From the NCBI GenBank assembly GCA_051294905.1, contig CM119379.1, positions 23,312,001 to 23,376,000 on the forward strand: a stretch of 64,000 nt of DNA. The letters are read 5' to 3'. The DNA is from Botryllus schlosseri (Eukaryota). Of the stretch, positions 24,320 to 55,005 are shown in pieces. Positions within the stretch are counted from its first letter, which is position 1, and the number at the start of each line of letters is the position of its first letter. The position numbers and the translations under genes are program-made. Under the pieces are notes generated by a model. That model made no database searches, was not told where the DNA came from, and saw nothing but the letters and a program-made list of their open reading frames with translations.

Positions 24320-25650
24320 TCAAACAGCAGTGATCGGAAATACAGGCGTTGCTAGTTGTTGTTCTTTAGGAGCTGTAGCTTGCGGTGGAGGTCGTCTGGT
24401 GTCCGGAACAGCTCTTCTCAATCGCGTTATTGCTGGAATATCGAATCTCCAGTTGGTGATCGTTACTGGGTCTTCTTCTTGTGGCGGCTGGTCGTTTCGC
24501 TTGCGCTCTGAGCAGAGTACCGCGGAACATGCTGCTATTAGCATCACACAACCGAAACCGATAAAGGCAAACCCAATTGTTGAGATGTTACTCTGCAGAC
24601 CCATGCTTATTGCTCCGTATAATGCCATGGTTATGCCGGTGATCAAGAGCGCCGCGCAGATAATGAGTACACATTCTGTCTTTGACGCTCTGGGTTTAGT
24701 AGTGCCTGCAAATAAAGCCAATATTGCCACTCGTGGAATGTAATTCGGACGTGCCGCCGTACGCGAGATTAGTCGGGCCTATACCGCAGCGCTGGTTTTG
24801 ACCGTAATGACTTTTCAAGTACAATTTATACAACGGGTGTGGTCGTGACGTCGCTGGCGAGGAAGTAGATCATAATATAGAATTGTTGATTGATAACGAC
24901 ATCCGCGGTGCCCGGCTGACGCGATGAATCTACTGCGCCTGAGAATACTGGACCTCCGTGCCTGGTATGTACTATTCAAAATAGGCAATGTTGCAACATT
25001 AAAAAATGAGGCTTGTAGAAACTCAAGCCAATAAAAGAAAGTGATGTTACTGTACTGTATGGGCTTATATGCGGATTATGGTAGTACACAATTTTCGCGG
25101 CGCCTATCATCCATTTTGAGCTGGTATTTCGGTGAACGTGACACGACCTGCAAAGTCGAAAATATTCAAGTTATCGTGGCAATATATTCGTCGATCTGGC
25201 ACATACGCAGCCACCATAAGTGACATTGTGAAAGTGGATTGAGTAAGCCTATGGTTGTTCGCGGCGATTTCACGACAACACACGCACCGTATTTCTATAC
25301 AAATTAACAAAATGTTTATCGCGGCACCGCTTAACCTACACACACACAGTGCAATTAAAATCCATGAATGTTTGTTGTTTACATTCTACCAGGCCTTATA
25401 CACCATACTTTCAGTGCGACTGAACAGATCATTTCACTCGAAACCAAAAGCGCAGCCTTATTGTTTTTTTTTTGAGGCTATACTTACGGTAAGTTTCTTC
25501 TTCAGGATGCGTCGGAATCCTTATAGGCCTAAACTTTGGTCCGGGAAACTGTAGATCTGGGTGCTCGACTCCACTCCAAGTGCTAACCATGTCCACAAAG
25601 TCAAAATGACACGAGAAGTCTTCATACGGACAGCGTTCATAGATCGGCAA
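24320..25650 (-). CDS. Predicted two-TM hairpin membrane protein, ~190 aa (cluster member 1)
   Basis: Exon 1 25488-25650 (MPIYERCPYEDF...PEEETY, phase-1 donor GTAAGT) joins in frame to exon 2 24320-24729. Exon 2 encodes hydrophobic CVLIICAALLITGITMALYG and ISTIGFAFIGFGCVMLIAACSAVL, then a Pro-rich tail. The acceptor (TTCCACGAG) is weak. Confidence 0.65.
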
Positions 25651-26573
25651 CTAGTTGATTGCTACGGGGATTTCTATGGCATAAGTAATTTGATAGATGG
25701 CCTACCTGTGGTACAGTGTGAGCTTGTAATTTGATCGCGGATCTCAGTCATCACAGCCGTGCTACGGACGTATCGTCGCGTAAGGTATACAAATCGATTA
25801 ATTGCTTTGATTTTGACCAATTATTGTGACAGTGGCGTAGAACCTGAGGTGGAAAAAACGCTTTGGTCCCTCCAGATTTTAGCTTGCGCATTTGTATGGC
25901 GCTCTAATCCAAGCCACTTTATGTAAAATCGTAATCACTTCTATTTGAATCTTTTCGAATGATGATGATGATCTGATGATTTCAAAATGCCTAGTACGAT
26001 GTGCAATAAAAAGACAATTCGTTGTGATATTTATTAATTTCCCAAAATATCCAGCGGTGTTTATCGATGATAGCATCATAGAAATTTCGATAACACATGT
26101 TCACTCGCGTGTATTAACTGGTTTATATACACGATGAAAGTTCAAATTTCATTCCCAAAATCATGTAACAGAGAATCAAACCGTAAAAGTTATTCGGTTA
26201 ACACCAAATCTAAATCAACAGGTAAGAATTGAGAGAACAATTAATATAACGATTATGAAGCGCGGAATATCTTCAGCGTATTGACAACAGTATTTCCAGT
26301 AGCCTATATTTTTCCCAAATTCGTTGGCAGACAGGTACACACAGAAGAAACCTAACTGCTTCAGTGCAAACAATTTAGGTCGATTCAATTGTTAACAGCT
26401 ATACAGGTGATAATCGGGGGTTGAGTGTAAATGTGTTCTGTAGAATTTTTGTACTTGTTGTTTGCTATTTGTACATATATCTACGGATGAGAGCGATGGA
26501 TGCTGCACATTTTGTGGTTTCAGGCTCAGCTCTTCTCATAGTGTGTTTGACACTGATTCTGGGATAGGCCTAC

Positions 26574-26711
26574 TGTGATTGTGATTAACGTAATGATTAT
26601 GTGTGTGCTCCCGACGCTCCTGTCGCGCGATCGACAGAACGGGCTCGAAGGCGAGAGGACTGGTTGTGCGGTTTTTACTGAAACGTTTTAAATACATTGA
26701 ACTATATTACA
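26574..26711 (+). repeat. 5' LTR (138 bp)
   Basis: TGTGATTGTGATTAAC...AACTATATTACA; identical to 32555-32692 except TGTCGCGCGA versus TGTCACGCGA. Confidence 0.97.
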
Positions 26712-26726
26712 AGCTATCGCGGCACA

Positions 26727-28844
26727 ATGGCGAATATGAAGTTAACTGATATTGTGAGGAGTTATGAAGATTATCCAACATCTGGTGATTTTGCAAAGTG
26801 GGTTGAGAAACTGGAACTGGTCGCCGAGCTGCAAGAACTGACGGACAAACTGCCAACTATTTTCCCATTGCTGTTGGATGGCCCTGCATTTGCAGTGTTC
26901 AAGCAGTTGCCAGAAGGCGACAGGAAGGATTACAAGAAGTCGAAACAAGCTATTTTGAACGCGTTTGGAGTGAATTGCTATGACGCGTATAGCGAATTCC
27001 AGCGAAGAATACTGCTGGATGAAGAACCTGTCGATGTGTACCTTTCCGACCTAAAAAGGCTTGCGCTATTGATTGGGATCAGACTTGGACAACTAGATAA
27101 TTCTAGTTGTCTAATTTCACTAAATTAGAGCGAAATACCAGTAATCTAATTCTAATCTAATTTGTGAAATGTTTCCATGCGCTAATTCTAATTCTAATCT
27201 AATTTGTGAAATGTTGTTATGCTCTAATTCTAATTCTAATCTAATTTGTGAATTGTCCTTATGCTCTAATTTTAATTCTAATCTAATTCATTGTTTTCCT
27301 GAAAATTCCTCTTTGTCCGAGTCATATTGCAGTGACTTGACAAGAATAATCTCGCGCAGGGAAGTCCAATGCAAAGTCGCCATCGCCTTACATACACCGA
27401 TCAGTCATAGTAGTTATTATGGCGACTAATAGCCTGCTAGAGTAGCTTGTATAGTCTGCGAACAACATTCTAGTTTTTAAAACTTTACGTTAGTACAACG
27501 CCGTTCTTACTAACGTGGGCAATGTCCATGACTACCACAAAAGAAGTAAGATTTTATTAAAGTAGTACAAATACAACAAGAAATATCATGATCATAAACG
27601 TCATTTTATTTTGAACGATTGTGAGCTGCGTACGATACCCGACATCGACAACGCTTTCCAACGACTAGTGAATCGATATTGGGGCTAGCCAGACATGTCA
27701 CTATATCTGAAAGACTATCTCATCCTAAAGATTGATCTTGTGGGGACGTCCTATAGGCTACATCGTTTTCGAAGCGTCTCTGTCTTGGCGATGTCTGGGC
27801 CATTGCATGTGGAGGCAATATGCATATTGGTATCACTTAATTGTCTCTCCGTGGAATGCTGTTGCCATCGCCGAAGCCGTTTCAGCTAGTGTCGAATAGT
27901 GTTGTTGGGCACAGGCGAATTGCTTATTTTGAAACAACAACAATAATAATAATTGGAAACTGAAATCAATTTTAGCAATTCAAAATGCTTTATTTAGCGT
28001 ATTTCCAAAATCTCAAATCAGATCGACGACCGCGATTGCGGTGACCCCTGGTATAGTAGAAAGCGAGTCAAGCTTGGTGTACAGAAGTTACCCATTCTCA
28101 TGGTTATGGGAATGCACTGTTGTTTTTGTTGTTGTTGTTTATTAAACAAAAATATGTGGCGCTAATCGCCTGACGGCCTTTTGTACCACGCACTGTGATT
28201 TGATGTGAACTGATGTGGCTGTATTCATTTCCCATTCACAATTTCATTCAATTTCCAAGTTTTCGCGAAAGTCAGTAACTCTAATTCTAATTCTAATTTA
28301 ATTTAGAAAATGCTTTGTAGCTCTAATTCTAATTCTAATCTAATTTAGAAAAGCTGTGTTGCTCTAATTCTAATTCTAATCTAATTTGGGAAAACTGTGT
28401 AGCTCTAATTCTAATTCTAATCTAATTTGGAAAAATCTGTGGAGCTCTAATTCTAATTCTAATCTAGTTCAAAAAAGCTAAAAATTTTCTAGTTGTCCAA
28501 GTCTGATTGGGATGAGAGTGGATGCATCCGAGGCGTTAATTCGGTGCGCGTTTGTAAATGGTCTCCCCCCAGAGGTTTCATGTCAGTTAAAGTCTGTAGC
28601 AGAAGTGGACAAAATGAATTTGAGTGATCTCGTCGCGCGGGCACGAGTAATAATGTCGGTCAGGAGCAGCTTCAATGTATCGTGCGCGGTCGGTTCGCGT
28701 CAGCGGAAGGACAACTGTTTTTTCTGCGGGAAGCCTGGTCACTTTGCTAAAGAATGCCCTATTAAAGAGCCAAGAAATGACGGTAACGAAATGGCCTGGA
28801 GACAACCAAGATGTTTTTCCTGTGGTAAGCTTGGTCATATATAG
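26727..28844 (+). pseudogene. gag: Gypsy gag, split by a MITE and truncated in the second zinc knuckle
   Basis: Removing 27080-28505 plus one TSD fuses ...LALLIG|MRVDASEALIRCAF... in frame. First knuckle CFFCGKPGHFAKEC is intact; the second, CFSCGKLGHI, stops at TAG 28842-28844. Confidence 0.88.
27080..28505. mobile_element. 1426-bp hAT-type non-autonomous element inserted in gag
   Basis: TIR CAGACTTGGACAACTAGA(T/A)AATT (22/23); perfect 8-bp TSD ATTGGGAT (27072-27079, 28506-28513); subterminal arrays of a ~40-bp CTAATTCTAATTCTAATCTAATTT unit. Confidence 0.92.
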
Positions 28845-28951
28845 CTCGCCAATGCAGAGCCGATGAACGTCACAAGATCGCAGCAGGAAAATTACCAAGG
28901 AGAACCGTCAGCACCGGACGCGTTCTCCCGTATTCACAAGTTGGAAAAAAG

Positions 28952-31903
28952 GTGCTACCGTTTGTTGTGGTTTCAATTGGTGGAAAACCTCTCAAGGCTC
29001 TGGTGGACACTGGGTGCCAGCAATCTGTTGTTCTTGAAGACGTGTGTCGTCGTATGGGCCATACCGTTTCGGGTCCGAGAAGGATTGTGGAGATGCTGAA
29101 CGGGGAAAGCACTAGTTGTTACGGAGAGACCATGGTAATGATGGTTGTAGGCGAGACCAACGTCAGGGTGCAATGCTTGGTAGCCTCGGAGCTCGTATGT
29201 GCTGCTGGCGTGATTCTCGGTATTGATGTTATCCAGCAATTAGGCGGAGTATTCGTTGATTCAAATCTTGACGTGTGGTTTGGTGCAAAGGTGTGTGTAG
29301 CAAGTGCGGTGGCCGCGACGAATAAACGGTTACAAATTGACGATAAATATTTCATTGCAAAATTTGATGGAGCGAAGTGGACTATGGAGTGGAGATGGGA
29401 AAATGGCGAGCCTGAGTTGACTAATCAATGTGGGGGATATCAGATGCCGTCGGAGTGTCGTACATCGTTTGATGATGAACTCAGCCAATGGATCAGAGAC
29501 GGGTGGTTGGTGGAGTACGATCCTGCCCGTCACGGTTCCCACGGCGGAATAATCCCGCTGTTGGCGGTCAAGCAACCAAACAAGAAGCAGAAGGTACGGC
29601 CAGTGATGGACTACCGCGAGCTGAATTCCCATGTCATGAGTCACCCCGGACTGGATGCGGCAGTATGCCAAGAAAAATTGAGAAATTGGCGCAAACGAAG
29701 TAATCGTGCATCGATCTTGGATCTCCGGAAGGCATACCTACAGATTCACGTGTCCGAGAGGCTGCAAAAATTCCAAGTAGTGTGGCATCAAGGAAATGTT
29801 TACGTTATGACACGAATGGGGTTCGGTTTGAACATCGGCCCAAAGGTGATGACCAAGATCATTTCTACCGTATTGTCACTGGAAGACGACATAGCAAGGG
29901 GAACCGACCATTACATCGACGACATCTGGGTTGATGAGAATGTTGTAGCGGTTGAGAAAGTGCGCAGGCATTTGGCAAGTTATGGGTTAGCGACGAAGGA
30001 TCCAGTTCCGTTACGTGATGCACGTGTACTTGGATTGCGGGTGAATGAGACCCAGAATGGAGTACTGGAGTGGAGGAGAGATGGTGATCTGCCGAGTTTG
30101 AACGGCCGCATGACGAAGAGAGGGCTATTTTCTGTGTTCGGCAAGCTCACGGGGCATTATCCCGTGGCCGGGTGGTTGAGAACTGCATGCAGTCATGTAA
30201 AACGACTTACTAACGAGATAGCGTGGGATGCGGTAATCCCGAATCCAGTTATGCATTTGGCTGAAGAAATCTTGACGAAGGTACGAGAGAACGATCCAGT
30301 AAGAGGGGACTGGAGAGTATATCGTGATGGAAGAGCGCAAATTTGGTGCGATGCGAGCAATATGGCGGTGGCATGCTGTTTGACCGTAAATGGGAAGGTT
30401 GTCGAAGATGCAGCATGGATGAGGAAAGAGGACGACGTAACGCATATAAATGTCGCGGAGCTCGACGCTGTCGTAAAGGGATTAAGTTTGGTGCTGAGAT
30501 GGGGTTTCACTAATGTAGAAGTTGTGACCGACTCGGTCAGTGTGTTCCATTGGGTCAAGTCAATATTGGAAGATTCGCGTCGACCTAGAGTCAGTGGGCT
30601 AAGTGAAATGATTATTAAAAGAAGATTGGGAATTATCGCGCAGCTCTTTCAGGAATACTGCATGGAGGTCACAATCCGTTGGGTACCATCGTCGGAGAAT
30701 CTCGCAGATGCACTAACGAGAGTCCCGCAACGCTGGCTAAAGAAGGTGTGTCTTGGAGTAAACCGGCGTAATGAGAACGTGATTGAACAGGTACGGGCTC
30801 TTCATAACGTGCATCACCTAGGTGTGAATCGGACGCTTTTCGTGGCCAAAAGAAGCATTGGCGAAGCTGTTACTCGTGATGTTGTTCAACGGGTAATCAA
30901 TGAGTGCAACATCTGTCGCAGAATTGATCCGAGTCCCGTGAGATGGGAACACGGGCAGCTTTCCGTTCCCGTTGTCTGGGAGCGCCTGGCACTTGACATT
31001 ACTTACGTAAACACTCGACCATACCTGAGTTTGATCGACTGCGGGCCTAGTCGATTTGCGATATGGCGGGCGGTGCGAAATGAAACGGCCGATAAAATCA
31101 TCCAGATCCTTGAACAAGTCTTCTCGGAAAGAGGTGCGCCGAGTGAAATTCTGAGTGATAACGGACCTTGTTTTACTAGTCAGAATATGCGCCAGTTTTT
31201 GAACAGTTGGGGGGTGGAACATGTGTTCAGCTGCGCCTACCGGCATTCTGGAAATGGTATTGTGGAGCGGAATCACAGAACTATCAAAAGAATGGCCGCG
31301 AGATCTGGAGGTAGTGTTGAACGAATGGTGTATTGGTACAATCACACTCCGAATTCGGAGGATATTGTACCTGCGGATAAGGTGTTTCGCTATGAATCTG
31401 GTTTGCCATCTTCAATGATCCGCGCAAGCAGAAAGAGATTGGACCGACAAAATAGTTCCAACCCATACCGAGACGGTGATGTAGTGTTCGTGAAGCCACC
31501 AAATGCTCGATGTACTACTCAATGGAATAGAGGTGTCGTTACCAGGGTTGTCGCCGACGTGGTGGTCGAGGTTGACGGGATGAATCGACATCTTTCTGAC
31601 GTTAGACTCGCCGTCGGGGATCTACCTAACCCACCAGGAGGAAGTGTTACGACGCGCGAAATCGACTTGAATTGTAGCAGAGAAGATGATGCCATTGATA
31701 CGGAAAACAGCGGTAACTCGGGTGAAGCTATTGACCCAGTCGGTACGGAAGAGAATATCACCGATGGGAATAACTCAGCTGATCTGGATCAACCTGGTGA
31801 TGACAATGTCGACCATGATATTGAGAGAAATAACTCTGACCATTCGCGACCAAATCGGGATCGAGCGCCGCCACAATGGTTGGCTGACTTTTATGTAGGC
31901 TAG
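28952..31903 (+). CDS. pol: Gypsy pol polyprotein (protease, RT, RNase H, integrase), uninterrupted 983 aa
   Basis: PR LVDTGC; RT LDLRKAYLQ and YIDD; RNase H WCDAS, ELDA, DS, NLADALTR; integrase HHCC (HNVHH...CNIC), LDITY, SDNGPCF, NGIVERNHRTIK; GPY/F-like NPYRDGDVVFVK. The frame is open from 28829. Confidence 0.95.
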   Translation: MLPFVVVSIGGKPLKALVDTGCQQSVVLEDVCRRMGHTVSGPRRIVEMLNGESTSCYGETMVMMVVGETNVRVQCLVASELVCAAGVILGIDVIQQLGGVFVDSNLDVWFGAKVCVASAVAATNKRLQIDDKYFIAKFDGAKWTMEWRWENGEPELTNQCGGYQMPSECRTSFDDELSQWIRDGWLVEYDPARHGSHGGIIPLLAVKQPNKKQKVRPVMDYRELNSHVMSHPGLDAAVCQEKLRNWRKRSNRASILDLRKAYLQIHVSERLQKFQVVWHQGNVYVMTRMGFGLNIGPKVMTKIISTVLSLEDDIARGTDHYIDDIWVDENVVAVEKVRRHLASYGLATKDPVPLRDARVLGLRVNETQNGVLEWRRDGDLPSLNGRMTKRGLFSVFGKLTGHYPVAGWLRTACSHVKRLTNEIAWDAVIPNPVMHLAEEILTKVRENDPVRGDWRVYRDGRAQIWCDASNMAVACCLTVNGKVVEDAAWMRKEDDVTHINVAELDAVVKGLSLVLRWGFTNVEVVTDSVSVFHWVKSILEDSRRPRVSGLSEMIIKRRLGIIAQLFQEYCMEVTIRWVPSSENLADALTRVPQRWLKKVCLGVNRRNENVIEQVRALHNVHHLGVNRTLFVAKRSIGEAVTRDVVQRVINECNICRRIDPSPVRWEHGQLSVPVVWERLALDITYVNTRPYLSLIDCGPSRFAIWRAVRNETADKIIQILEQVFSERGAPSEILSDNGPCFTSQNMRQFLNSWGVEHVFSCAYRHSGNGIVERNHRTIKRMAARSGGSVERMVYWYNHTPNSEDIVPADKVFRYESGLPSSMIRASRKRLDRQNSSNPYRDGDVVFVKPPNARCTTQWNRGVVTRVVADVVVEVDGMNRHLSDVRLAVGDLPNPPGGSVTTREIDLNCSREDDAIDTENSGNSGEAIDPVGTEENITDGNNSADLDQPGDDNVDHDIERNNSDHSRPNRDRAPPQWLADFYVG

Positions 31904-32554
31904 ATGTTGAGTGTATCTGTACTAAGAATAAGTGATTTTTTACATTTTGATTTGTTCGCGCGTAAATGCTTATGCCTTGTGATGATTGCATATACCTTGC
32001 AAGTTTTAGCCTTCAATTACGAATTCTGTATGCTACAAATTCCAGTTATCATCGCTTTCGTCCATCGTTTGAGGCACACCTACACCGCAGTTTTTCGTTT
32101 TTTTGTACGCCAGTATGTTTTAGTTGTGGGATCCACTTTGTGTGCTTCTAATAGCGAACGACTCGTGTTAATTTATTCAGAATTGGCCCATTGGCCTATA
32201 TAGGCTACACTGCGGGGTTACACTCAAAAGCTTTGAATTTGGGCCAGTGATCAATAGATCACGGGGGTAGGAAGACCATATGACTCCCCGTCCCCGTCAA
32301 TAGATCACAGGCATATATCGAATTTTAACTTTCAATTTGATGTATCGATATGTGTACACTGCGTATTAGTTTGTTTTTGTGTCCACATTTATCACGTTGA
32401 CTTGGCTTCCCGTGCGATCTTCAGACCAAGGGGAAGTTTGCCGTTTCATGTAGGCTATACACTGTTTTAGAATTGTTCACCTGATTTTCACGTTTGAAGT
32501 TACATCGTTGCGTTATGTGTTGGTTTCCCATGTGATCTTTAGATCAAGGGGAAG

Positions 32555-32692
32555 TGTGATTGTGATTAACGTAATGATTATGTGTGTGCTCCCGACGCTC
32601 CTGTCACGCGATCGACAGAACGGGCTCGAAGGCGAGAGGACTGGTTGTGCGGTTTTTACTGAAACGTTTTAAATACATTGAACTATATTACA
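32555..32692 (+). repeat. 3' LTR (138 bp)
   Basis: Direct repeat of 26574-26711, preceded by the PPT and followed by TSD CCTAC. Confidence 0.97.
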
Positions 32693-33726: not shown

Positions 33727-35983
33727 TTATTCGCTTTCATTCTTATACGTGCACATGTACACGGAAAATAATATAATTCCAAAGAAACTTAAATTCGAAC
33801 CAATGACACGAACATCATCCGAAGTATTCCAGCCTAAGTAATATATAAAAAGCATCCCGACTCCTAGAAGTAAAATGAAAAGAAAAAATATCATAGCTGC
33901 GAAGTGTTCCCACGTATCATTAACGACCAGACGAAACAGCGTCCATTTGGGTATCCGAAGACTTCCCGCGAGAGATGTGACACTGTCAACGAGAGCTCCT
34001 GAAACATACACATCACGATAAGCGCTACGAAATCATCACATCTATATAGGCCTATAATACAATTTATTTCATAGGAGATTTTGTCTTCGCCTACTCAGCA
34101 AATGTATGCTTGCGTACCTGCCTCAATCGCTGTACCTTTGATGTCTCCAAATCTAATAATTGGTTTGGTGTGCCACATAAGTTATATGATTGGGTGAAGG
34201 CCCCGGCCCCATCATCATCATCATCGGTTTATTAGCAATTTTATCAGTCCCATAATCCATACACCACAAAAATGCGATACAGTGAAAAGATAGGAAGGTA
34301 TCCAAGCGACATGTAGTCTATGGAATCAGACACCCACCTTGGCCTAGGCCAGTGGTTCTCAACCGGGGGTCCGCGGACCCCTGTGGGTCCGTGAAGCATT
34401 TTCAGGGGATCCGCGAAGCCTCAAAATAATTGATAACCAAATTTGAATTTTTTTAATTAGAAAAATCACGAGGCGCAGTTTCGCTTCATTACTAGTAAAA
34501 CTCCAGAGCTAACATCAACAGAATGCCGATCTGAGGTGAAATATCCTGCTGTGCAGACTCATTTTAATTGGTAAATTGCCAATAGCCCACTGATACAAAC
34601 ATTTTGCTGTTTGGGGATGTTTTGTTCGGGATTGTGGAAAAAAAGTTGGATGAGTAACGTCAATTACGCGGTGACTTCGAAATGTTTATAAAATCCATTT
34701 TCTCCTGGAATATACTAAACGATCTTTCCATCATGACTTCACGATAAGCTGCGATGTGGAAACGACCAGACTTGACGGTATATGTTCATTAAAAATTATA
34801 TCTTTTTGGTCCCATATTTGTTGCGATCATACCCAAATGTGTCTTCGGAAGCGTTACACGTTATTGCCACATTTGCCACCTATTATATTTGTGGTAATGG
34901 ATTTTCGGCACTCATTCATATCAAATCGAAGGCGCGTATTTTCAAGATACGACCACGTATTTCAAGAATTGCGGTTGCAGAATTAGCTTTGAAACTGGAA
35001 CTAAACCCAATTTCTACATGAATAGTATGATCTTATTTTCAAGAACGGTCATTTTGTTGCTGTTTAACACTAAGCCTACAGTGATCATTTGCACAAGACA
35101 GGAGACGGTTGCACGTGAGCTAAATCTGAACTTAAACTTCGTGGCGGTCCGCGGGGGTCCGTGACGATCCGAAACGGGTCCGCGAAGACAAAAAGGTTGA
35201 GAACCACTGGCCTAGGCGATGTAAAGAGGAGGCATGCATACTGAATGGAAAGTAAAAGAAGATGGTATTGAAAAAAAGCCAGCGACAAAATTGAGGTGGC
35301 ATGTCATGGAAGGCGAGATCGATAGGTCAGGTCGTGGTCCGCTAATCTTGAGGATGGACTAGTATTTATTTAGTAGTAATTGCTTGTATTTCGACTTGAA
35401 TGTGGACATGCTCGTCGACTGACGGATGGCCGGCGGGCGGGATATACTGTTCCACACGTCAGGTCCGACATATTTGATAGAGCAATGATCTTTTCGGTCG
35501 ATCATATTATGATGAACGGTATATGGACGGTGATGAAAAAATAGTAAACTTTGACATCAGTATCAGTTTATTAATAATTTCAACATTAATCAAAACACGG
35601 CAAGACTGCGGTACAAAAAAAGATAGGACGGTGTCTTTGGAATCAGACACCGACGTCCAACATAGGCCTTGCACCTGCACGCATTAGGCTACATCACCAA
35701 TAAAACAAAATTGAAAACTATTTTGAATGCAGCATATAATTATCCAATGGAATAATATTATCAAACATATATTCTCTGATATAAGCATGTCCTACATAGG
35801 GGAAAGTCGGAAAATACACTTCTCAAAAATTCCAAATTTAATCGCTCAAAACTCACGGTGAGTGCGAGCAGGGATTGTACCATCTTCATGATTGCCTGTC
35901 TCGTTTTGTTTGGTGCCAATTATTTCCCCAGCATGTCGAACCGGTTTGTTGTTTGCACCTGCCCCTGCAGACATCTTCTTCAT
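33727..35983 (-). CDS. Predicted two-TM hairpin membrane protein, ~132 aa (cluster member 2)
   Basis: Exon 1 35857-35983 (MKKMSAGAGANNKP...PARTH, phase-1 donor GTGAGT) joins in frame to exon 2 33727-33998 (acceptor ATGTTTCAG). Exon 2 encodes FAAMIFFLFILLLGVGMLFIYYLG and VIGSNLSFFGIILFSVYMC. Confidence 0.55.
34213..35520 (-). mobile_element. 5'-truncated L2/CR1-group LINE 3' end, interrupted by a hAT element
   Basis: Minus strand reads HCSIKYVGPDVWNSI...TFKSKYKQLLLNKY*, a typical ORF2 C-terminus, then a 3' UTR shared with 41040-41465 and a (ATG)n-like tail. Confidence 0.8.
34350..35209 (+). mobile_element. Buster/Charlie-family hAT deletion derivative
   Basis: TIR CAGTGGTTCTCAACC; perfect TSD GCCTAGGC (34342-34349, 35210-35217). 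The internal remnant YPNVSSEALHVIATFATYYICGNGFSALIHIKSKAR resembles the Buster transposase C-terminus (FATTYLCExGFS motif). Confidence 0.9.
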
Positions 35984-43596: not shown

Positions 43597-45099
43597 CAGT
43601 GGTTCTTAACCTTGCCCCCAGCGCCCCCCAGGGGGCGCTGGCGATGTTGAAGGGGGGCGGAAACGCTCAGGGGGCGATATGGGGGGCGCTGGGCTCAGGG
43701 GGGCGGTATGGGGGGCGCTGGAGAAAAAGGCTTCGCAGTAGATGATGTGGTGATAGGTCATATCCTTAATGAGTATTCAGAGCAAATTATCACCGAAAAC
43801 TTCGTTACATATAGCCTTCAAAATACATATATGGTTAATTGTCCATGGGCGCCTAAAAAACTGACACCGAATGTTCATGTCTTGGCAATCTGAACCCCAG
43901 AAGACGAATTCCATCTGGCAGGGAAAAATTATATGTCAGTGAAGAAATACCAATCTGAAATCGTGTGCGTCTTTTAGTTTAGTACGATTGGGCGACAGGG
44001 ATATTCCTGTTGGGCGATATCCCCATTGAGTGATTCTATATTTTTTGATATTGCAGACAGGGGGTCACGAAATAACATCATGCAACGAAGTCATACCAAC
44101 GGGTTCGCCCGCCCGAATATGTTTAATTATTAGTAACGGGCCCTACTGTTTCCAAGAAACCTCACAATGTTCGCTTCAAGTTTTGATGAGTCTGCGCACA
44201 CTCAACAACTCACTGCGCTGACCCCTGGACAACAGTGCGTATCGACTAAAAAAAGGTAATAACTTCGGATTTGTTGTGCGCAACGTAGATTTTCTGTGCG
44301 CAGAGACCGTGTCAGCACTGCGCACGTGCGCAGCTTAGAGGGAACATTGCACCTCCCTCAGCTCTACCGGTAAATGTGTTTACGTGAGCAGAGAGAGGAT
44401 AAAAATTAATCTCAATTTACATGCAATTTCCGATGATATTGACCAATTCAATCATTAATTAGTGAAATTTTTCGCGCGACTAGGCGACAATAGCTGCCTC
44501 AGTAAATGGACACCTAACAGGCTTTCTAACAGGATACCTAACAGGCTTTCAGCAAATAGAGGACAGCCTAATGGGGGTCTGGGAGTGAAGTCCCCCGGAA
44601 GCTCGGTTTATCACCCGATGGGCGCCCAGGACCAACGTTTTTTGTTTGGGGGGGGGGGCTGGCGAAGTGCTGTTACGGCCCTGGTGACGAATAATTGTGC
44701 CTGCGGGCACGCCCGAATATGTTTAATTATTAATTACGTGCCCTTTATCTTCCCATACAACAGCTCACTCAGTTTATCGCGACGTATATTTGTAATTGCC
44801 ACCTATTCATTCATGCATTATAGAAAATTTTGGTACCTAGGGTGACCAGGCCACACAAACTTTGCTGACCATCGAAATCACGATAGGGGGTTCGTGGGGG
44901 CGAAGCCCTCAGAAGTTCGGTTTATCACGCTATGGGTGCGCAAGGCAATCGTTTTTAGGGGGTTGACGAAGTGCTGTTACGGCCCTCCCTCTTACTCATT
45001 GTCTTTATTACATTCCTTACATTATGAAGTTTGGGGGGGCGCTGGAGCACGATAATTTTTGAAAGGGGGCGCTGGAGGAAAAAAGGTTAAGAACCACTG
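43597..45099. mobile_element. Buster-type hAT non-autonomous element containing fragments of other elements
   Basis: TIR CAGTGGTTCTTAACC; flanks GCCTACGC and GCCTACGT (7/8). Absent from the paralogous promoter copies at 49606-49990 and 55006-55544. Confidence 0.85.
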
Positions 45100-45148
45100 G
45101 CCTACGTCGTGTGACGTTGTTTCTTTAGCCTCTCCACCAACTTGCAAG

Positions 45149-45715
45149 ATGGAAGCTAGTGGTGTCGATAACCGACAAGATAGTGTAATGGTGGAGCGTC
45201 CAGCTTCATGAATGGTAAGTCGTGGGTTCAATCCCCGGCCGGGTCCGACCAAAGACCTGATTAGTAACACTGGTATCTACGGCTTCCCCACTTGACGCTC
45301 AGCATTACCAGGATAGCATGAAAGGGTGGTGCAAGACTTGAAAACCCTTACAAGGTTATATCTGCACCATCCTTGTCCAGTGGCATATGCCAATCATCAA
45401 CTTATGGCATGTATATGCACAGTTCGGGTGCGCACGTCATGAGGGTCGGTGTATATGCCACAAAACATTCAGAGCAAAATATACTACATCCTATGCTGCC
45501 AGTGGAAACGCAAAAGAGATAGAAGCCGTGTCAGAGCTGCTGCAGAATGATACTGATGTCACATTTAATATCCTTGGTTTGAAAGACCTCCTTTCTAGAA
45601 CCTGAGGGAGGGTTGAAATGTTCAAAAATTCAACAGGAATTCATTCCAATTGCCATTGAAGGAAAATATGTCATAGGTAATGCAGTAACTGGTTCTGGAA
45701 AAACTTGGGCCTTCC
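45149..45715 (+). pseudogene. Decayed duplicate of DDX47 exon 1, interrupted by a SINE
   Basis: ATGGAAGCTAGTGGTGTCGATA, then an insertion, then CCAGTGGAAACGCAAAAGAGATAGAAGCCGTGTCAGAGCTGCTGCAGAATGATACTGATGTCAC...GGTTCTGGAAAAAC. Aligns with 55545-55790 but carries indels and stops and has no downstream exons. Confidence 0.88.
45171..45498 (+). mobile_element. tRNA-derived SINE
   Basis: A-box TAGTGTAATGG, B-box GGTTCAATCCC and core CTGGTATC...GACGCTCAGCATT shared with 5963-6211; the 3' half differs from that copy. Confidence 0.78.
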
Positions 45716-46853
45716 AACACCATGATTAGTATAACTTACAACTAGAAAAGCTAGAAGATATGGCTCACCAATATCTGCCGAACTCTTGATTATTGATATT
45801 GCTTTTGGTAGTGCAATCATATCATTTAAGACTATCATACAAATATTACTTCTGTAAAAATAGGAGTCAAGGTAAATATTGAAAATAAATACCAAGTCAC
45901 ATCTTTACAGCCATCCAGAAATGCAATATCATTCGCAATACAAAACTATCCCACAATGACAATATTTCATAAACAATACAACAAATAAATCAGAAATCGG
46001 AATGCAATAGAAGGACTGGACAGTGGAAAAAATATATATTTGCCAAATACTCTGAATTTATAACTTTGCTAGAAACAGAAATCATAATCATATAAAGTGT
46101 CGATAAAATATATAATTTCATATAGCAAATACTGTAGCATTGCATTCAGTGAAATTACTGGCCAGGTAGGAAAAATGAAGGAATTGAACTTTTGGAAAGC
46201 GCTAAATTTAGAACTAATATATTAGAGCACATTGCATACTATTGTGTTTGGAGTAGCCTACTGGTCATTGAATTGTTCTGGTTTCAAATAAAAATTTTTA
46301 CTTGAAGAATTATCAACTACCGGTATCAATATGTAACTTCATATTCATGCTGGTACGTAATTGCACATACAGAGAAGCGATGCAAAATCGAAACAGTCCT
46401 TTTTCTCACAAAATAAAAATTACAGCAGACTACCATCCAACATGCAACTCACTAATATTAATTGTATAACATAAAGGCCACACAAAAAAGGGCTGGTAGA
46501 GAGGGTAATATTTATTCAGTTTTGCAATTAATCCTTCCCTGTAATAAATATAATCAATGACAAGGGCAAATCTTCACTCATCTAGTGGTCATCTGAAGTA
46601 AGTGAGCAATTGCGATTGTCAGGAATTAATTCGAGGCAGATGCAATTGTCCGGCCAAACAAATGCTAATCAGCCAATTGAGCTAATCTAGCAGACTTTAG
46701 TTTTATGGCCATATGTCAGATAGACTTCATACAGCTCAAAACCTGCTACAGCCAAGACTCAAACATCAGCTGTTGTTCAGGATAAGGCATCGCGAGCATT
46801 ACACAGTACAGTAATTGTGGTGTCTCGAATCTTCTTGACTAGTGAAATTAGAA

Positions 46854-49605
46854 TTACATCTTCCGAGTTGCTTCAGCGTAAGAAGGTGGCGGTTTCGAGG
46901 ATACTGAAGTTGAATATGCAAATCCACTGTATTGCATATCTTGATTTACTTGCATTGTCGAAGTATAAGATGGTACATCATCAGGGTGTGCATTGGCCTC
47001 CAACCCTTCATTTGATACAGTAGGGGCATACTGCGGCGCTATGGTGGCACCAACTTCCACAGTCCTGTTTGCAAGCCTTTTACGATGATCGCGATACACA
47101 GAAAGTGCCGCCACGACAAATATCGTTCCGAATACGATAGGTCCTATACCAAAAACGGGCGATACTTGAAATGCTATTATAAGTCCAAAACCAACAAGTA
47201 TGATTCCGTTGACGATGAAGAAACTTACGCAACTACGCGCTGATTGACCGGCGGTAATGGTGGCACCTGTTAATTGAAATCAAATTGTCAGGCAATGCCT
47301 GTTACTTTTATGGCTACAAGATATATCAACTAATGATGAAGTGAGAAGGTTGACCGATAACAAATCACTGAAATCAGTGTAAAAGAGACAAACCAAAAGT
47401 GATACTTCTTGACTGGGGGGTTGGGAGCGCTATTGACTCAAATTGTTAGAATAAATACTCGATTCTGATCGCAGTACTCCATCATTGTGCCCAGTCATAA
47501 TTACAGTGCACAACCATTATCAAGGTCGCTCGTTTCTGGTGGCAGTGGGAGTCGAGTAGTGATGAGATTAAAGCAATGCCACTTGACACAATCAATATGA
47601 ATAGTATATGTATATAAATATAACCCTGTTACCTGTGGACGTACTGGAAGTGCCAGGATGTGTCCCCACCGTCGATTGTCTCACACTTGCGGTACCTGTA
47701 AATCGAGAAAAATTGTCAGAGAATGGCTATTAGAAAGACGACCCAATATGTTCAACTAATGATGAAGTCAGAAGACATGCCCATTGACTGAATCACCGAC
47801 AAGACAAGACACCCAACAAGCGGCAATTCTTGAGCTTTTCAGTTCAAAACTTGCATCCCACATCTTTACTAAAATCGAAAAATAGTATCTTGGAAGTGAT
47901 CACCGCAAATTAGATGATGCCAAGCAGCTTGGTATACTCCGGTAGTTTCCAAAGTGAGTGCCAGTGTCACATCGGAGGGGTTCGCAAACTGGAAGTGGGC
48001 GCTAGCTACAATCTGGAATTGGGGGGAGGGTGCCGTGTAGACTGGGGGTGGGCAGATCTGCTTCATGCGCGAGCTGCATATCAAAAATCTCTGAGTTAGG
48101 AGAGCCACAACACAAAAATTCAAAAATACGAATTTATGACGTCACAATGAAAGGTAGGCTGTCGAATGAAGTATATTATTGTGTGGTGTGGATGAGAATT
48201 TAAGGATGATATCAGATGCGTATCCTATGTCAAACTCTGCAGTTATTGCTAGCCTCTACGATAAAATGGTAGAGCCGTATCAGCCATTGCTACCTCGGAA
48301 ATGATTTCGACCTGCGCTAGCATCATAAATTTTCAATTTCATTGTTGAACACAATGATTTATCATTGATACATGACCATGACCAGGCACCCATTGTTGCG
48401 GGTTAAACGTTTATGTGACCTCAATTCGAGAGTTCAATTGCAAATTTCTAAAACTGTAGTTCCACCTTCCCCTAAATTTTATTAGTCTTGCGTAAGCCAT
48501 AAGGAAATGAATAGGACGGAAACAATACCCAAATTGTTAATACGCGATGCAATGAATTTAAACCTCTCTATCAAAATGGCGAAACGTGTGTCCAATCATT
48601 AAAGAGCCGCGATAAACGGTTGAAAGAGCCACCGTTTTCCCACCACTAGTATAGACTACAGAAAACTGTTTGGAAATTGGTAACAATTGAGTGTACTAAC
48701 CAGCGATCTAATCAATCAATGAAAAGATCCATTAGCATGCATAAGCTTTTTGAACAAGAATCCTCAACATACATAGTCGAATTCCCGTAAAACGTTATCC
48801 TTAAAGCGTTATTCACTTATTGCATCACCACGAAGCAACTTCAGATGAGAAATAAACTTGCACGATTTTATTCAGATTGCGTCTGCCCTGGAATATCAAC
48901 AAAGTGGTGACCCCTATATAACCACGCTATCTCTTTCTATAGAACGATTGATGCGACACAAAATACTCATGAGTGGTTGCAACACCGAAAAATATTCCAA
49001 TCAAATTTATGAACCGTTAAGAGCCGAATGGAACTGTTTCGTAGATTGGCCTGTTACGTGCAAAGAAATACGCGTTGATAGTAAATTCTAGGGTTCTGTA
49101 CCATAATTTCTCTTTCCAAATTTGTAAATGTGCGACGACACGAAATACTCCTGAGAATCACGGGAAACACGGCTCGACTTCGACGAGACGCGCAATGGCG
49201 TCACAATCAGTACATGACACGTATCAGCCATTGTCTAGCGGCGCTACTATTGTTAGAAACAATGCCGGTTTCAGACTTTGCAGGCGAAATGACAGTCATG
49301 AAAGCACCTTTAATGTCCAACTAGTTATTAAGATAAGTTTGGCAAACAATATGGTATATACACTGATAACCGGAGACCGCTGTACTCATTCTGCAGGAGT
49401 GATCATACATACGCTATCTATTAAATTCGCTATTTTTCCAGCAAAGTCATTGCGAACGACACATATGCATACACCCAAGTTACCTTCGATTTCGTCGGTG
49501 ATTTGGAGACTGTCTCGGCCAATGGCTTCGCCCTGTATTGATGCGAATTCGTGCAAGTGTATGGGCCCTTGCATGTCCATGTCCACCAACAACTATTCTA
49601 CGCAT
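46854..49605 (-). CDS. Two-TM PPxY paralogue B (3 exons); the ancestral Arg-rich frame is out of phase, while an alternative-frame ATG gives an open 190-aa product
   Basis: Exon 1 49484-49605 (49484-49580 from the alternative ATG), mini-exon 47633-47695 (63 nt, phase 1-1), exon 3 46854-47266 (open, ending KPPPSYAEATRKM). The ATG at 49605 reaches the donor in phase 2; the ATG at 49580 reaches it in phase 1. Confidence 0.55.
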
Positions 49606-49990
49606 ATATCCAGCGCACGGGCTATCTAACTATCGACGTACTGGTGCAATTCAACATGTCGAACACTTCTCATTTCCTCGATATTGGTGACAGACCATTC
49701 ATAGGCACACACCTACACCTACGCCAACGCAGTCACCTCGATTTTTGTTTTGATTGTGAATATGGTTGCGCCTGGCTTCATTATTCATGATCTCATATGC
49801 GTAAAGGTGATCCAAGGACATTGGGTTGTTGGATCTGTATGCTGAAATAGAGAAGCCCAGATTTGGCTCACAGGTTATCCGGCCGCAGTAAAATGACACA
49901 CGTTGCGTTGCAGTGCTATTGTTTAAGCGTACCCCTGTATCGTACCGATTCTCTGGCACCTCATCACTCTCTTTACGCATACTTGAAAAG

Positions 49991-50222
49991 ATGGTAGCTA
50001 GTGGTATCGGCACCAGTACAAACGGAGAAGAGATTAAAGCCGTGTTGGAGATGCTGCATAAGGATACATTTAAATCTCTCGGCTAGAAGGATGTCCTGTG
50101 TGAAACCTGCGAAGAGCTGAAATGGAAGACCCCTTCAAAATTACAGCAGGAATCCATTCCAGTTTCCATTGAAGAAATGTATGTCACAGGTCGTGCAGAA
50201 ACTGGTTCTGGGTATTCTGCGA
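49991..50222 (+). pseudogene. Second decayed duplicate of DDX47 exon 1
   Basis: ATGGTAGCTAGTGGTATCGGCACCAGT...GTCCTGTGTGAAACCTGCGAAGAGCTGAAATGGAAGACCCCTTC...GAAACTGGTTCTGG aligns with DDX47 exon 1, with deletions and no splice donor or downstream exons. Confidence 0.9.
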
Positions 50223-50674
50223 TCGCCTTGCAGCACCAGGAATCCAATAACTTTAAAACTGGAAAAGCTAGAAGATACGGCTCACCCGTATCTGCCGAGC
50301 TCTTGATTATAGATATTGCTTTTGGTAGTGCAATCATATCATTTAGGACTATCAAATATTAGTTCTGTAAAAATAGGTCAAGGTAAATATTGAAAATAAA
50401 TACCAAGTCACATCTTTACAGTCATCCAGAAATGCAATAGGGCCTATCATTTGCAATACAAAATTATCTCACAATGGCAAAATTTTACTAACAATACAAC
50501 AATTTAAATCAGAAATGGGAATGCAATACTAGGACTGGACAGTGGAAAATCTAGAAAAAATAAATATTTGCGAAATATACTGAATATATAACTTTGTAAA
50601 ATATAGATATCATAATATAATAATATGTTGATAATACATAACTCCACGTAGCAATACTATAATATCGTGTTCAG

Positions 50675-51018
50675 TAGGGTTACAATATTTTGGAATCGGG
50701 AAAGGACAGTTTTTCACAATTTGAATACCAGAGGAAAATCCAGAAAAAATGGTAAATTTTTCGCTTGACTAAAAAAACAGAAATTCATTTTTCTTTCATA
50801 TTGTCCGTTGATTGACTAAAAAATAAGGTTGTCACTTTCGTTCGAACCACGAATTTCCTATATAGTGTCATTTATGCCCACCCGCTATCTTAGCTCTAAA
50901 AGCTGTAAAGGAGTACGAATTGGCAAAAAGTATGACATTTAGGCGTCCTCAGACGACATTTTGAAAAACCGGAAAAAGGAAGACAAATCCTCCTAAAGGA
51001 GGATGTATGGTAACCCTA
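50675..51018. mobile_element. hAT-type MITE
   Basis: TIR TAGGGTTAC(A/C)ATA; perfect 8-bp TSD GTGTTCAG (50667-50674, 51019-51026); empty sites in the paralogous units near 40205 and 46145. Confidence 0.88.
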
Positions 51019-51621
51019 GTGTTCAGTAAAATTACTGGCAACCTAGAAAAAAATGAAGTCATGAAGGCATTCAACTTTCGGAAACAAACAAATATTATGG
51101 AGCACATCGAATACTATCGTGTTTTATATCTGGTTTTAGATATAGTTGAATTAAATTGAAGATTCAGATTCATACTGGTACATAATTGCACATACAGTGA
51201 CAGAGAAGCCATGCAAAATCGAAACTAAACTGCAATAGGTAAGGAGTTGAGAAAATAAAACTTCTAATTATAGTTCTACAATATTGCATCAGTATTTTTT
51301 CTCAATAGATAAAAATTAAACCATATGTTTGTCTACCACTCAATATGCAATGTAAAAAGACTGTGCTTAAAGGTTGGCTACATACTGTCAAATGCAGCCT
51401 AGTCATTGTCCAGTATTTCAATACTAATTCCTAATTTAATACCTAATTTACAGTATCAACGATTTGGAAAACCAAGCCCTACTCAAGATTTCTTGGATAG
51501 CATTATACATTAATTTTAGTGTCTCGAATCCCTTTGACTAGTGACATTTTCATGATAGGCATCACTATCGATATCCGAGTTCTTTTAGTTTCTCGAAATT
51601 TCTCGATAAATGAAATGATCA

Positions 51622-54600
51622 CTATATCTTCAGAGTTGCTTCTGCATATGAAGGTGGTGGTGGTGGTTCTGAGGTTACTGAAGTTGGATACCGGTATGCA
51701 AAACCGACACATTGCGCTGCTTGGTTTCCTTGTATAGTTGAGGTATAAGATGGTGCAGTGCCAGGGTATGCACCGACATCCAACACTTCAGTTGATACAG
51801 TAGAAACATCTTGCGGTGATATGGTAGCAACAGCGTCCACAGTTCTGTTCGCAGGCCTTTTACGATGAACAAGACAAAAAATAAACACTATCATGAGCGA
51901 TACTGTTCCGAAGAAGATAGGTCCAATCCCAACGAAGGGCGATACTTGAAATGTTAGCACAAGTCCAATACCAAAAAATATGATACCATTGACCAGCAAA
52001 CCATATATGCAACACCAACCCACCGATTGTCTGGCGGAACCTGTTAATTGAGAATATATTGTCAGGCAATGGTTATTACTACAACAGGAGTGAAACCCGA
52101 GTGTCTGCGTGGCATTTGGAATTCTGACGCCAAGTAGGTATTTGACATCTGTACGACTGAATAGCTAGATGGCGTTTGAGACGCTAAGTCGCTCTGTATG
52201 GCATTTGGCGTTTCCTATGTACCACAGATATTCAGACGACGTACAGCGTGCCATATCACGTCTCGCGAATAGGGTTCAATTTGAAGGTTGAGGCTTGCAC
52301 AGCAGCATTTGCAGCTAAAATCTAAGCAAAGCATGTCAGTGGGCAAGTGATATGATGTTTTTTTCATGCGTACAGTGTACTACCACTGCAAGAGGATTAC
52401 AGTATGTGACATAGTAAGAGTAACAAGACATTTTATCGTTTTCTAGTATATTGATTCATTCTAGACTGAAACAGCTGCGAAACCCTTGTAGCTCCACTTC
52501 GTATATGTTGTGGTAAATCAACAGTTCAAGTCACTGAGATCGTATTCACCTATTCAACACCTATTTCGTTTCCATGTTACTCACCGAAATTCTACACAAG
52601 TACTACAAATGAAACTCGGTGGTGGGAAGTCCATTATTAAAGGCCAGGAGGAAGGATTCATGTACAAAAGATGGACTTGTGTAGTGCTTGCTTTAAAGGT
52701 TTCTGATGCTATTAGGTTTTGAGATTTGAGAAAACTGATCCGCAATCTACTCTCACTTGATAGGCATCCGAACTCGACCATAACCGTACAACTAGAGCAT
52801 TAATCCCTCCTGCACAGCTACAATTTGACCATCCTGCACAAGCTTGTGAAAACTACCGAAAACAGTAAAGTAAACTTCCGTTTGATGAAACGGATATGTT
52901 AGTCCACGTCAATGTCATGTCAGATAAAAACCATCTCAAATATGTAGCATGTTTTTCCTGCAGATGAGAAAGAATTGGCGAAATATTGCAACAAATGCAG
53001 TTGTCATCACTCATCAGTGTCAGATCAGCCAGTGCTTATTATAACATGACTCATGACTGTATCTATATGTATGCAGTGTTAGGAATCAGATAGCTGCAAG
53101 AAGGCCAGACAGAAGTCGATTCATATAAGGATCAATATGGGTTGGGAGGAGCAGTGTGAAATGACTGAACATGCAATCTTAGGCATCAGATAGCTGCGAG
53201 AATATGATAGTCTCACGGAGTCACTAGTGAAAGGATTTAGCTATCGACCAGCTTCTCGAGATACCAGACGCCATGTAGCTGTTGGCGTTGGAATAAACGG
53301 GATGACAAACGCTATGTAGCTACTCGCCATGTCAAAATACCAGATGCCAAACACCGTGTAGCTACTTGGCGTCTCAGAATTCCAGTGTCTGTGCAGGTTC
53401 AACCCCAACTAGTGGACAAGCAGTGAATATTTCAGTACTCGATTCCAATTCGAACACTCAGTCATTGTGCCTAGCCATAATTACTATGTACAAACAGGGT
53501 CGCTCGTTTCTGGCGGCAGTGGGTGTCAAGTAGTGATGATATTACTGTTACGGTATGTCATTACTCAAATTTAATATGAATAGTATATGTATAAAAATTT
53601 AACCATGATACCTGTGGAGGTACCGGAAGGTGTTCCTGTCCTCCGATTTAGGTGGACCGTCGAATCTCTCACACTTGCAGTACCTGTAAATTGAGAATAA
53701 ATTGACAGGGAACGCCTATTACAAAGGCGACCAAATATTTTCTCAACTAATGATGAAGTCAGAAGATTGGTCCATTGACCGAAATCAGTGATAAAACACC
53801 CAACAAGCGACAATTCTTGAGTTGTTCAGTTCAAAACTTGCATCATAGATCTTTATTAGGAGCGAAAAATAGTATCTTGAAGTGATCACCACTAAATAGA
53901 TGAAGAGCTTCTTGGAGGTACAGAACTTCAATATACAATTAAATAGTATATTCATATTGACGCTGACGGTTACCCCTGACGAGAGTCAGCCGAAAATATT
54001 CGGGTTCATTTCAATATGAATATACTACTTAATCACTAAATAGATGATGCCAAGCAGATTGGTTACAGACTGGTAGTTTACAATCTGGACGCTACAGCCC
54101 CTATACAGTTCCTGGAAACCTGGATAGTAACTTCAGTGATACAGAATACTGTTCGCTAATATTATTTGGTTAACTTACTACAGAATTCTCAAATTAATTG
54201 GTGGTTATCTAACAATCAGGACTGTGGATGGCTATGTTTGTGATCTGAATTTATTCATGGGAATGTCACTTCCAAGGGAGTTCATTTCTAGTTAATGATC
54301 AAGAAGACATTGGATATGAAAAATGCATTGTTATACTGGCGTGTCCATGTCGGACATTCTCTCTGATCAAACACCGTGTCGTGTACTCCAAGATTTCAAG
54401 GCACGCAGTATCGGGCACGGCAAATTCGCTCATGATTTTAGTAGCCAACTTTTTTTTAGTTGCAGGCCTACTGTACCGTATCTTACACATTTTTCAGATT
54501 TTTCCGATGTAGACCCCTAAATACCTATAGGCCTATGCAATAGAAAATATTGTGTTGGACTGATAAATGAGCAATTAGAGGCAGGGAATGTCTGAAAAAA

Positions 54601-55005
54601 ATCAGGGAGTTTGAAAGGGATGACTACGCAAGCACCTAATACCCATGGATACGATTACATCACTGTCTTAACCGCACCAAGACTAGTCTCTGGCTCTCTA
54701 CTACAGCAAGAATAATTATGGTGGTCGTTGTGATTGTGAAAATATACAAAAAATTTGCACCAATATTGATCAATAAATTCCCTCACAGAGCCATGTCATA
54801 TCCCGAAAAGAGCCATATATGGATCGCGAGCCATACCGGTATAGGTTCCTGACCCTTGGTTAATATATACCCATGTTACCTATATAAACACCGGTATGAG
54901 GTCTTCTTATTCGATTTCGTCGGTGAGGAGGCGGTCTCGACCCACCCGGCCCACCCTCCTCGGTCTGTGGGCCCTTGCACGTCCACCACCACCTCTTCTT
55001 GGCAT
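51622..55005 (-). pseudogene. Two-TM PPxY paralogue C (3 exons); exon 1 frameshifted, exon 3 fully open
   Basis: Exon 1 54880-55005 starts MPRRGGGGRARAHRPRR but meets an in-frame TAA; the homologous end HRRNRIRRPHTGVYIG is in another frame with no ATG. Mini-exon 53612-53683 (72 nt, phase 1-1). Exon 3 51622-52040 is open and ends PPPPPSYAEATLKI. Confidence 0.65.
52110..53384. mobile_element. Putative Mutator-like non-autonomous element
   Basis: Inverted ends TGGAATTCTGA(GA)CGCCAAGTAG with TGGC-rich subterminal repeats; 9-bp flanks GTGTCTGCG and GTGTCTGTG (8/9). Confidence 0.5.

Follow-up and report, generated by a model that had tools for sequence, protein, structure and literature searches.

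The DNA examined here is a stretch of 64,000 nucleotides (hereafter the window) from the ascidian Botryllus schlosseri (GenBank assembly GCA_051294905.1, contig CM119379.1, positions 23,312,001 to 23,376,000 of the forward strand). The interval between CLPP-like exons (near 20.6-21.6 kb) and the start of DDX47 (55545) contains six minus-strand open reading frames (ORFs), designated m1 to m6 in order of position, which a sequence-only reading had described as exons of one old and still expanding family of membrane hairpin proteins with a shared phase-1 exon design. All six ORFs are present at the positions and in the frames that it reported, the two hydrophobic segments joined by a short loop are found in six of six (hairpin score 1.81-2.42), and the nine-residue strings that it quoted from the second helices all match the translations. 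A hydropathy scan for two separate hydrophobic 19-mers (score at least 1.8) identified seven ORFs in the window, against 0.18 +/- 0.43 expected from 60 second-order Markov simulations of it; six of the seven are those already named, on the minus strand at 24-52 kb, and the pattern of hairpin ORFs is real and not trivially random. The seventh, an ORF of 62 amino acids (aa) at 26379-26564 on the opposite (plus) strand, scores 2.14 and 2.29 and stops 10 bp short of the insertion site of a long terminal repeat (LTR) element; hairpin ORFs can thus arise outside the set of six. Family members demonstrable in the window by sequence comparison number three (m4, m5 and m6), so that the signal reported earlier is real but over-grouped: this is a modest lineage-specific expansion, not a six-gene family.

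The genes m4, m5 and m6 are probably tandem paralogues of a taxonomically restricted ascidian gene, combining a transmembrane (TM) hairpin with a C-terminal PPxY motif and descended from a two-exon ancestor adjacent to DDX47. Their parts are as follows (a slash marks a splice junction):

41821-42230, minus strand: m4 exon 2 (last exon, stop included), with two TM helices, a basic juxtamembrane stretch, and a disordered tail with APSY and terminal PPPSYAEAT
42231-43012, minus strand: m4 intron, 782 nt, phase 1, donor TATAG/GTAAT, acceptor caattcacag/GT
43013-43154, minus strand: m4 exon 1, ATG plus 47 codons plus 1 base, Arg-rich
46854-47266, minus strand: m5 last exon, hairpin and PPxY tail
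47633-47695, minus strand: m5 middle exon candidate, 63 nt, phase 1-1, a chimera of exon-2 start and exon-1 end
49479-49605, minus strand: m5 remnant of the ancestral Arg-rich first exon, its frame closed by a stop and the old donor lost
51622-52040, minus strand: m6 last exon, hairpin and PPxY tail
53612-53683, minus strand: m6 middle exon candidate, 72 nt, phase 1-1, of chimeric origin as in m5
54880-55005, minus strand: m6 remnant of the ancestral first exon, 126 nt from ATG 55005 to the old donor, out of phase (phase 0)

The three proteins are 55-66% identical, with pairwise E values of 1e-43 to 1e-60, and their DNA aligns at 71-78% identity, in agreement with the sequence-only reading; its term "recent duplicates" holds in a relative sense only, the synonymous distance (dS) among the three being 0.42-0.49. 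An exhaustive HMMER search through 1.84e9 cluster representatives yielded just three relatives (P0001-P0003, with E values of 1e-28, 4e-17 and 9e-14), all of them unnamed singletons, two from Logan read assemblies and one from a marine biofilm metagenome assembly in ENA. A family profile built from m4, m5, m6 and these three outside relatives recovered m4-m6 from among the 777 window ORFs of at least 40 aa, with E values of 1e-61 to 1e-68 (203-225 bits). Across the six family sequences, among which P0003 is only 35% identical to m4, 20 columns are invariant, and these include the block PPPSYAEAT, which sits three to six residues before the end of the protein in six of six and is missing from m1-m3. 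The invariant positions of the helices are G17, G24, G36, P39 and G43, and outside the helices the PPxY block is the sole stretch that is invariant in all six. A Pfam scan of nine sequences offered no fitting family for m4-m6, a PDB sequence search gave no match below E 0.3, Rfam and tRNA scans returned nothing relevant, and neither a word-index homologue search with m6 nor JGI metagenome scans with the family alignment produced a match. The nearest poly(A) signal of m4-m6 lies 180-340 nt from the stop. Synonymous codon usage, tried as a test of whether m1-m3 are coding, has no discriminating power in this genome, the bona fide gene HSDL2 ranking 20th of 127 ORFs and m4-m6 near the bottom.

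The gene model is anchored in two contigs from outside the window. On the genomic contig L002, DDX47 exon 1 lies on one strand, and about 0.5 kb away on the other strand an exon beginning MPRRGRARR is followed by a 71-nt phase-1 intron (donor G/GT, acceptor cag/GT) and then by a hairpin exon. The 1.2-kb contig L001, which encodes P0003, carries a contiguous ORF of 182 aa with flanks resembling untranslated regions; it starts MPRRGGGRRARARR, runs into the hairpin and ends in PPPSYAEATMVK. The acceptor of m4-m6 (..caattMacag/GT) has the same phase as that of L002, and the layout of L002 and L001 validates both this phase-1 acceptor and the MPRRGG-type first exon for m4-m6. The shared acceptor proposed earlier for all six ORFs is thereby backed for m4-m6, the corresponding sites of m1-m3 being merely AG dinucleotides upstream of the ORF. 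Because DDX47 is head-to-head with the hairpin gene in L002 too, the arrangement is taken to be ancestral. The resulting design comprises a first exon that encodes an extremely Arg-rich N-terminus of 47-61 residues with no acidic residue (MPRRGG.RRARARR...), and a second that encodes two TM helices with a loop of about five residues, a basic stretch and a disordered, Pro-, Ser- and Thr-rich tail about 70 residues long. The family is new and unnamed but of a familiar kind, with a verified two-exon design, and the earlier view of a lineage-restricted gene without named orthologue, expanded in tandem and built from a two-helix phase-1 exon and a separate N-terminal exon, is supported.

The in-frame first exons that had been envisaged for most of the six ORFs are borne out in m4 alone (43013-43154): joined to 41821-42230 it gives an open frame of 183 aa, whose leader contains 18 Arg, 5 His and zero acidic residues in 47 positions. 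The MPRRGG-type first exon with its phase-1 intron is likewise intact in L002 and P0003, whereas in m5 and m6 it survives as out-of-frame remnants, and none was found upstream of m1-m3. Compared with that of m4, the first exon of m6 has a 17-nt gap and an in-frame TAA intervenes; in m5, a different frame that starts from ATG 49580 runs as far as a strong phase-1 donor (AAG/GTAACT) at 49484. The ratio of nonsynonymous to synonymous substitution (dN/dS) is 0.41-0.66 among m4-m6 and 0.22-0.47 against other species, and dN to L002 is 0.41 for m4 versus 0.55-0.57 for m5 and m6. Since m5 and m6 have the higher dN, m4 looks like the intact and well-kept copy by sequence comparison, though it is m6 that holds the ancestral site beside the real DDX47. 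The last exons of m5 and m6 are open under relaxed constraint and, as the ancestral first exon no longer reads into them, these copies are either decaying or using new starts.

Self-comparison of the window delimits the units in which the array grew, together with the neighbouring exons that were copied with it:

about 39764-45714, 45740-50211 and 50256-55790, no strand assigned: tandem duplication units, total span 39764-55790
45501-45714, plus strand: frameshifted dead copy of DDX47 exon 1 that was duplicated together with m4
49991-50212, plus strand: dead copy of DDX47 exon 1 with an in-frame stop and a 3-codon gap, co-duplicated with m5
55545-55808, plus strand: coding portion of exon 1 in the real DDX47, head-to-head with m6 at an ATG-to-ATG distance of 540 bp

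Each unit combines a hairpin gene and a spacer with the shared promoter and upstream region and with a DDX47 exon 1, which belongs to the real gene next to m6 and is a dead copy next to m4 and m5; the dead copies indicate that the shared promoter region was duplicated as well. Tandem duplication of a unit of about 4.5-6 kb that took in DDX47 exon 1 and the shared promoter along with the gene would thus have left three copies of the gene and, of DDX47 exon 1, two dead ones. The middle exon candidates of m5 and m6 are composite, with a 5' part that copies the exon-2 acceptor and first codons and a 3' part that copies the exon-1 end and donor; their lengths (63 and 72 nt) are both multiples of three, and phase 1-1 is preserved. 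The simplest explanation is a deletion in the ancestor of m5 and m6 that fused two neighbouring copies, joining the start of exon 2 to the end of exon 1 and leaving an in-frame chimeric middle exon, after which the first exons of m5 and m6 would have decayed or been replaced. A fourth unit containing m3 was considered and rejected: the leftmost spacer copy (39764-40953) can be explained as the original left end of the duplicated segment, and no remnant of DDX47 exon 1 lies near 39.5 kb. Between the upstream region of m4 and its dead DDX47 exon copy, about 2 kb of repeat material has been inserted (43600-45500), pieces of which match 5972-6082 and 61398-61604; the equivalent gap between hairpin gene and DDX47 is about 0.4-0.5 kb in m5, m6 and L002. 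A bolder account would make the whole CLPP-DDX47 interval a birth-and-death nursery of one fast-evolving hairpin gene, with m1-m3 the oldest and m4-m6 the youngest products, N-termini recruited from fused neighbour exons, and the leader of m5 read in a new frame from ATG 49580. We regard it as doubtful; were it true, the locus would show an orphan family in the act of overprinting at exon level and of turning over its N-termini in modular fashion.

Several observations weigh against the interpretation of m4-m6 as a functional ascidian gene family. The search returned no relative from the annotated ascidian proteomes in the library, which may reflect missed annotation instead of a true lack. 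That L001 represents a transcript is presumed. Both m5 and m6 may be pseudogenes, given that their first exons are broken and that dN/dS between them is 0.66. The APSY motif of the tail is non-canonical and is not kept in P0002 or P0003, and the proposed function, discussed below, rests on one short linear motif, PPxY.

The remaining three ORFs are as follows:

24320-24729, minus strand: m1, hairpin ORF, 135 codons over this span, with a Pro-rich tail without PPxY; kinship marginal
33727-33998, minus strand: m2, hairpin-like ORF ending 8 residues past helix 2; no detectable kinship
38118-38453, minus strand: m3, hairpin-like ORF of 111 aa that has an ATG of its own; kinship not detectable

The acceptor proposed for m1 has a poor pyrimidine tract, and m3 has an in-frame ATG at 38453, 25 nt upstream of its proposed acceptor. 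Across the plus strand opposite m1, nearly the same span (24330-24743) is open as an ORF of 137 codons. A G/C-rich 29-bp minisatellite lies just downstream of the m1 stop (24149-24212); it recurs in inverted orientation upstream of m4 exon 1 (43653-43721), where 24175-24265 matches 43688-43597 at 74% identity.

That all six exons belong to one old family, m1-m3 being ancient paralogues diverged past easy alignment, is an improbable reading of these ORFs, and the profile comparison of the hairpin exons groups m4-m6 only, leaving m1 marginal and m2 and m3 outside. The strong enrichment and common orientation of the hairpin ORFs would suit a single family, as would its fast evolution (P0003 is 35% identical to m4, and the HSDL2 protein of a neighbouring run accession in the same series is 80% identical to that of the window), and m1 is the next match after m4-m6 among the 777 ORFs (E 0.01, 12.1 bits), exceeding 1000 of 1000 whole-core shuffles. 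The significance that this last test (0/1000) appeared to give m1 was largely lost with layout-preserving shuffles and per-helix profiles: the score was equalled by 83 of 2000 shuffles that preserve the helix-loop-helix layout, per-helix profiles gave p = 0.085 and hhalign a probability of 4.7%. Because layout-preserving shuffles reach the score of m1, homology is not claimed for it. The family profile did not list m2 or m3 among its matches to window ORFs and, scored directly, they reached -0.8 and -1.1 bits, equal to their own shuffles; the six-member family proposed earlier is not supported by the statistical tests run. Moreover, nhmmer detected no DNA similarity to the family at m1-m3, searches upstream of them found no Arg-rich MPRRGG-type first exon, a C-terminal PPxY is absent from all three, and they fall outside the duplicated units. 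On the sequence comparisons made, m1-m3 are best described as hairpin-like ORFs whose membership is unproven, unsupported for m2 and m3 and marginal for m1.

An explanation for m2, m3 and possibly m1 that deserves serious consideration, even if the odds lie somewhat against it, is that they are chance open frames in T-rich DNA that read as hydrophobic helices. ORFs of 90-110 codons are common here (31 kb contain 95 ORFs of at least 60 aa), helix 2 is only marginally hydrophobic in both m2 and m3 (1.81 and 1.84), a poly(A) signal is absent or more than 500 nt away for m1-m3, as against 180-340 nt in m4-m6, and the plus strand, too, has a similar hairpin ORF (26379-26564). For m1, no homologue was found by the word index (which covered proteins of 74-236 aa) or by a JGI metagenome scan, and it has no Pfam match of note: the sole signal, to TMEM100 and in m1 only, reaches 12.2 bits (E 0.14) against a gathering threshold of 34 bits. 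Chance alone, however, predicts 0.18 hairpin ORFs under the Markov null, and four occur outside the family, three of them on the same strand and in the neighbourhood of the real family; the ORF of m1, moreover, is 152 codons long, and its two helices are very hydrophobic (2.45 and 2.42) and have basic flanks. The three could also be successive exons, in the order m3, m2, m1, of one unrelated multi-pass membrane-protein gene with one hairpin each, since they lie on the same strand and in order, a 6.1-kb LTR element between m1 and m2 could be intronic, and a protein longer than the 74-236 aa covered by the m1 homologue search would have escaped it. We consider this very improbable and did not retain it as a gene model: m2 has no phase-1 GT donor after its second helix, that of m3 is weak only (AGG/GTTTGG), a stop ends each ORF, and no Pfam membrane family rises above noise.

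Elsewhere in the window, an AAA/VWA8-like gene lies near the left end, and HSDL2 (14757-16346, minus strand) is a single uninterrupted ORF of 529 codons with a short-chain dehydrogenase domain and two SCP2 domains. HSDL2 marks the host as an ascidian: among named proteins, its best full-length match comes from Styela clava (71% identity, 525 aa, likewise in a two-SCP2 layout), and Phallusia, Clavelina and Ciona come next at 67-70%, where the listed proteins have 411-417 aa; unnamed proteins from read assemblies are 92, 80 and 75% identical. A CFA20-domain ORF follows at 17462-19471, and the two genes are divergent neighbours in a related read assembly as well. The LTR retrotransposon between m1 and m2 (26574-32692, plus strand) is young and complete, with 138-bp LTRs that are 99.3% identical, TG..CA ends and a 5-bp target-site duplication (CCTAC); it encodes a pol ORF of 983 aa (protease, reverse transcriptase, RNase H, integrase and DUF7047) and pieces of gag that include a zinc knuckle, and its gag region is broken by 41-42-bp tandem repeats at 27145-27288 and 28275-28479. 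Short interspersed repeats of two families, about 100-400 bp long, 72-90% identical and present in both orientations, are dispersed over introns and spacers at 3415-3573, 10478-10592, 23440-23567, 34256-34348, 35556-35635 and 41034-41221, and also at 6410-6629, 7488-7934, 9398-9518, 12122-12448 and, within the m4 intron, 42392-42797.

An AlphaFold2 model from the six-sequence alignment places helices at residues 2-30 and 33-58 with predicted local distance difference test scores of 75-86, the remainder scoring below 50 and being disordered. Foldseek with this model, which had been suggested as a route to relatives, retrieved generic helical hairpins and nothing specific (best E 1.4), which is no surprise for a fold of two helices. 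By the positive-inside rule, the Arg-rich leader together with the basic residues that follow helix 2 would place both termini in the cytosol. A cytosolic PPxY motif is the classical ligand of the group I WW domains in Nedd4-family ligases, and the motif of m4-m6 would accordingly dock the WW domains of Nedd4-family HECT ubiquitin ligases, making the protein either an adaptor that brings the ligase to the membrane or a ligase-dependent cargo that is itself sorted into the endosomal pathway. We propose such a membrane-anchored PPxY partner of HECT ligases, adaptor or self-sorting cargo, as a tentative role, well short of an even chance. As to the Arg-rich leader, retention signals and lipid binding are guesses.

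Known proteins offer architectural parallels of differing closeness. Ndfip1, Ndfip2 and yeast Bsd2 are small polytopic proteins that use cytosolic PPxY motifs to recruit Nedd4-family ligases and to activate them; like m4-m6 they are small membrane proteins with PPxY, but they have three TM helices and N-terminal PY motifs where m4-m6 have two helices and a C-terminal motif, and no Pfam match links them. Barttin (BSND) has an N-terminal two-helix hairpin and a long cytoplasmic tail with a PY motif, and TMEM174, TMEM171 and TMEM100, small membrane proteins of vertebrates, have paired helices. What had been noted earlier as a likeness to barttin, TMEM171 and TMEM174 holds only at the level of architecture, the hairpin of m4-m6 being followed, as in barttin, by a tail with a PY motif. 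It does not extend to sequence: TMEM171, TMEM174 and barttin have no Pfam match at E<=10, a range in which only unspecific membrane families appear, and the faint TMEM100 signal concerns m1, below threshold, and not m4-m6. Barttin has no sequence or profile similarity to m4-m6 and lacks an Arg-rich leader, and nothing shown for m4-m6 corresponds to its function as a ClC-K subunit. The closest system in both architecture and proposed mechanism is yeast Sna3p (Pmp3/Sna), with two TM domains and a cytoplasmic C-terminal PPxY (PPAY), through which it binds the Nedd4-type ligase Rsp5p and on which its sorting into the endosomal and multivesicular body pathway depends (PMC2171029). The helices of m4-m6 (2-30 and 33-58) and their PPPSY near the C-terminus match this plan, the cytosolic side of the motif being inferred from charge; Sna3p differs in having no Arg-rich N-terminal extension and in belonging to a fungal and plant, not animal, group, and none of the nine sequences has a Pmp3/Sna Pfam match at E<=10. 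The family could also be real and yet act by another route than Nedd4-type ligases, for instance as a hairpin that oligomerises or as a barttin-like accessory subunit of a channel or transporter, with PPxY serving only its own turnover or binding other WW proteins. The conserved Gly/Pro pattern of the helices suggests helix packing or partner contacts, and the adaptor model leaves the Arg-rich N-terminus unexplained; but the PPxY block is the only invariant stretch outside the helices in the six sequences, and no sequence or fold links the family to any channel subunit, so that we hold such a role to be unlikely.

For annotation, the locus teaches that two helices and a Gly pattern are insufficient for homology, three of the six flagged exons being callable as members. 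It also provides an example of how such a family may grow: a tandem duplication would have carried with it a bidirectional promoter and the first exon of the neighbouring gene, two copies would later have fused into a three-exon gene, and first exons would have decayed or been replaced. An unannotated, taxonomically restricted protein family is thus added to the gene content of ascidians, and the invariant C-terminal PPxY on a minimal two-helix membrane anchor gives it a testable handle.

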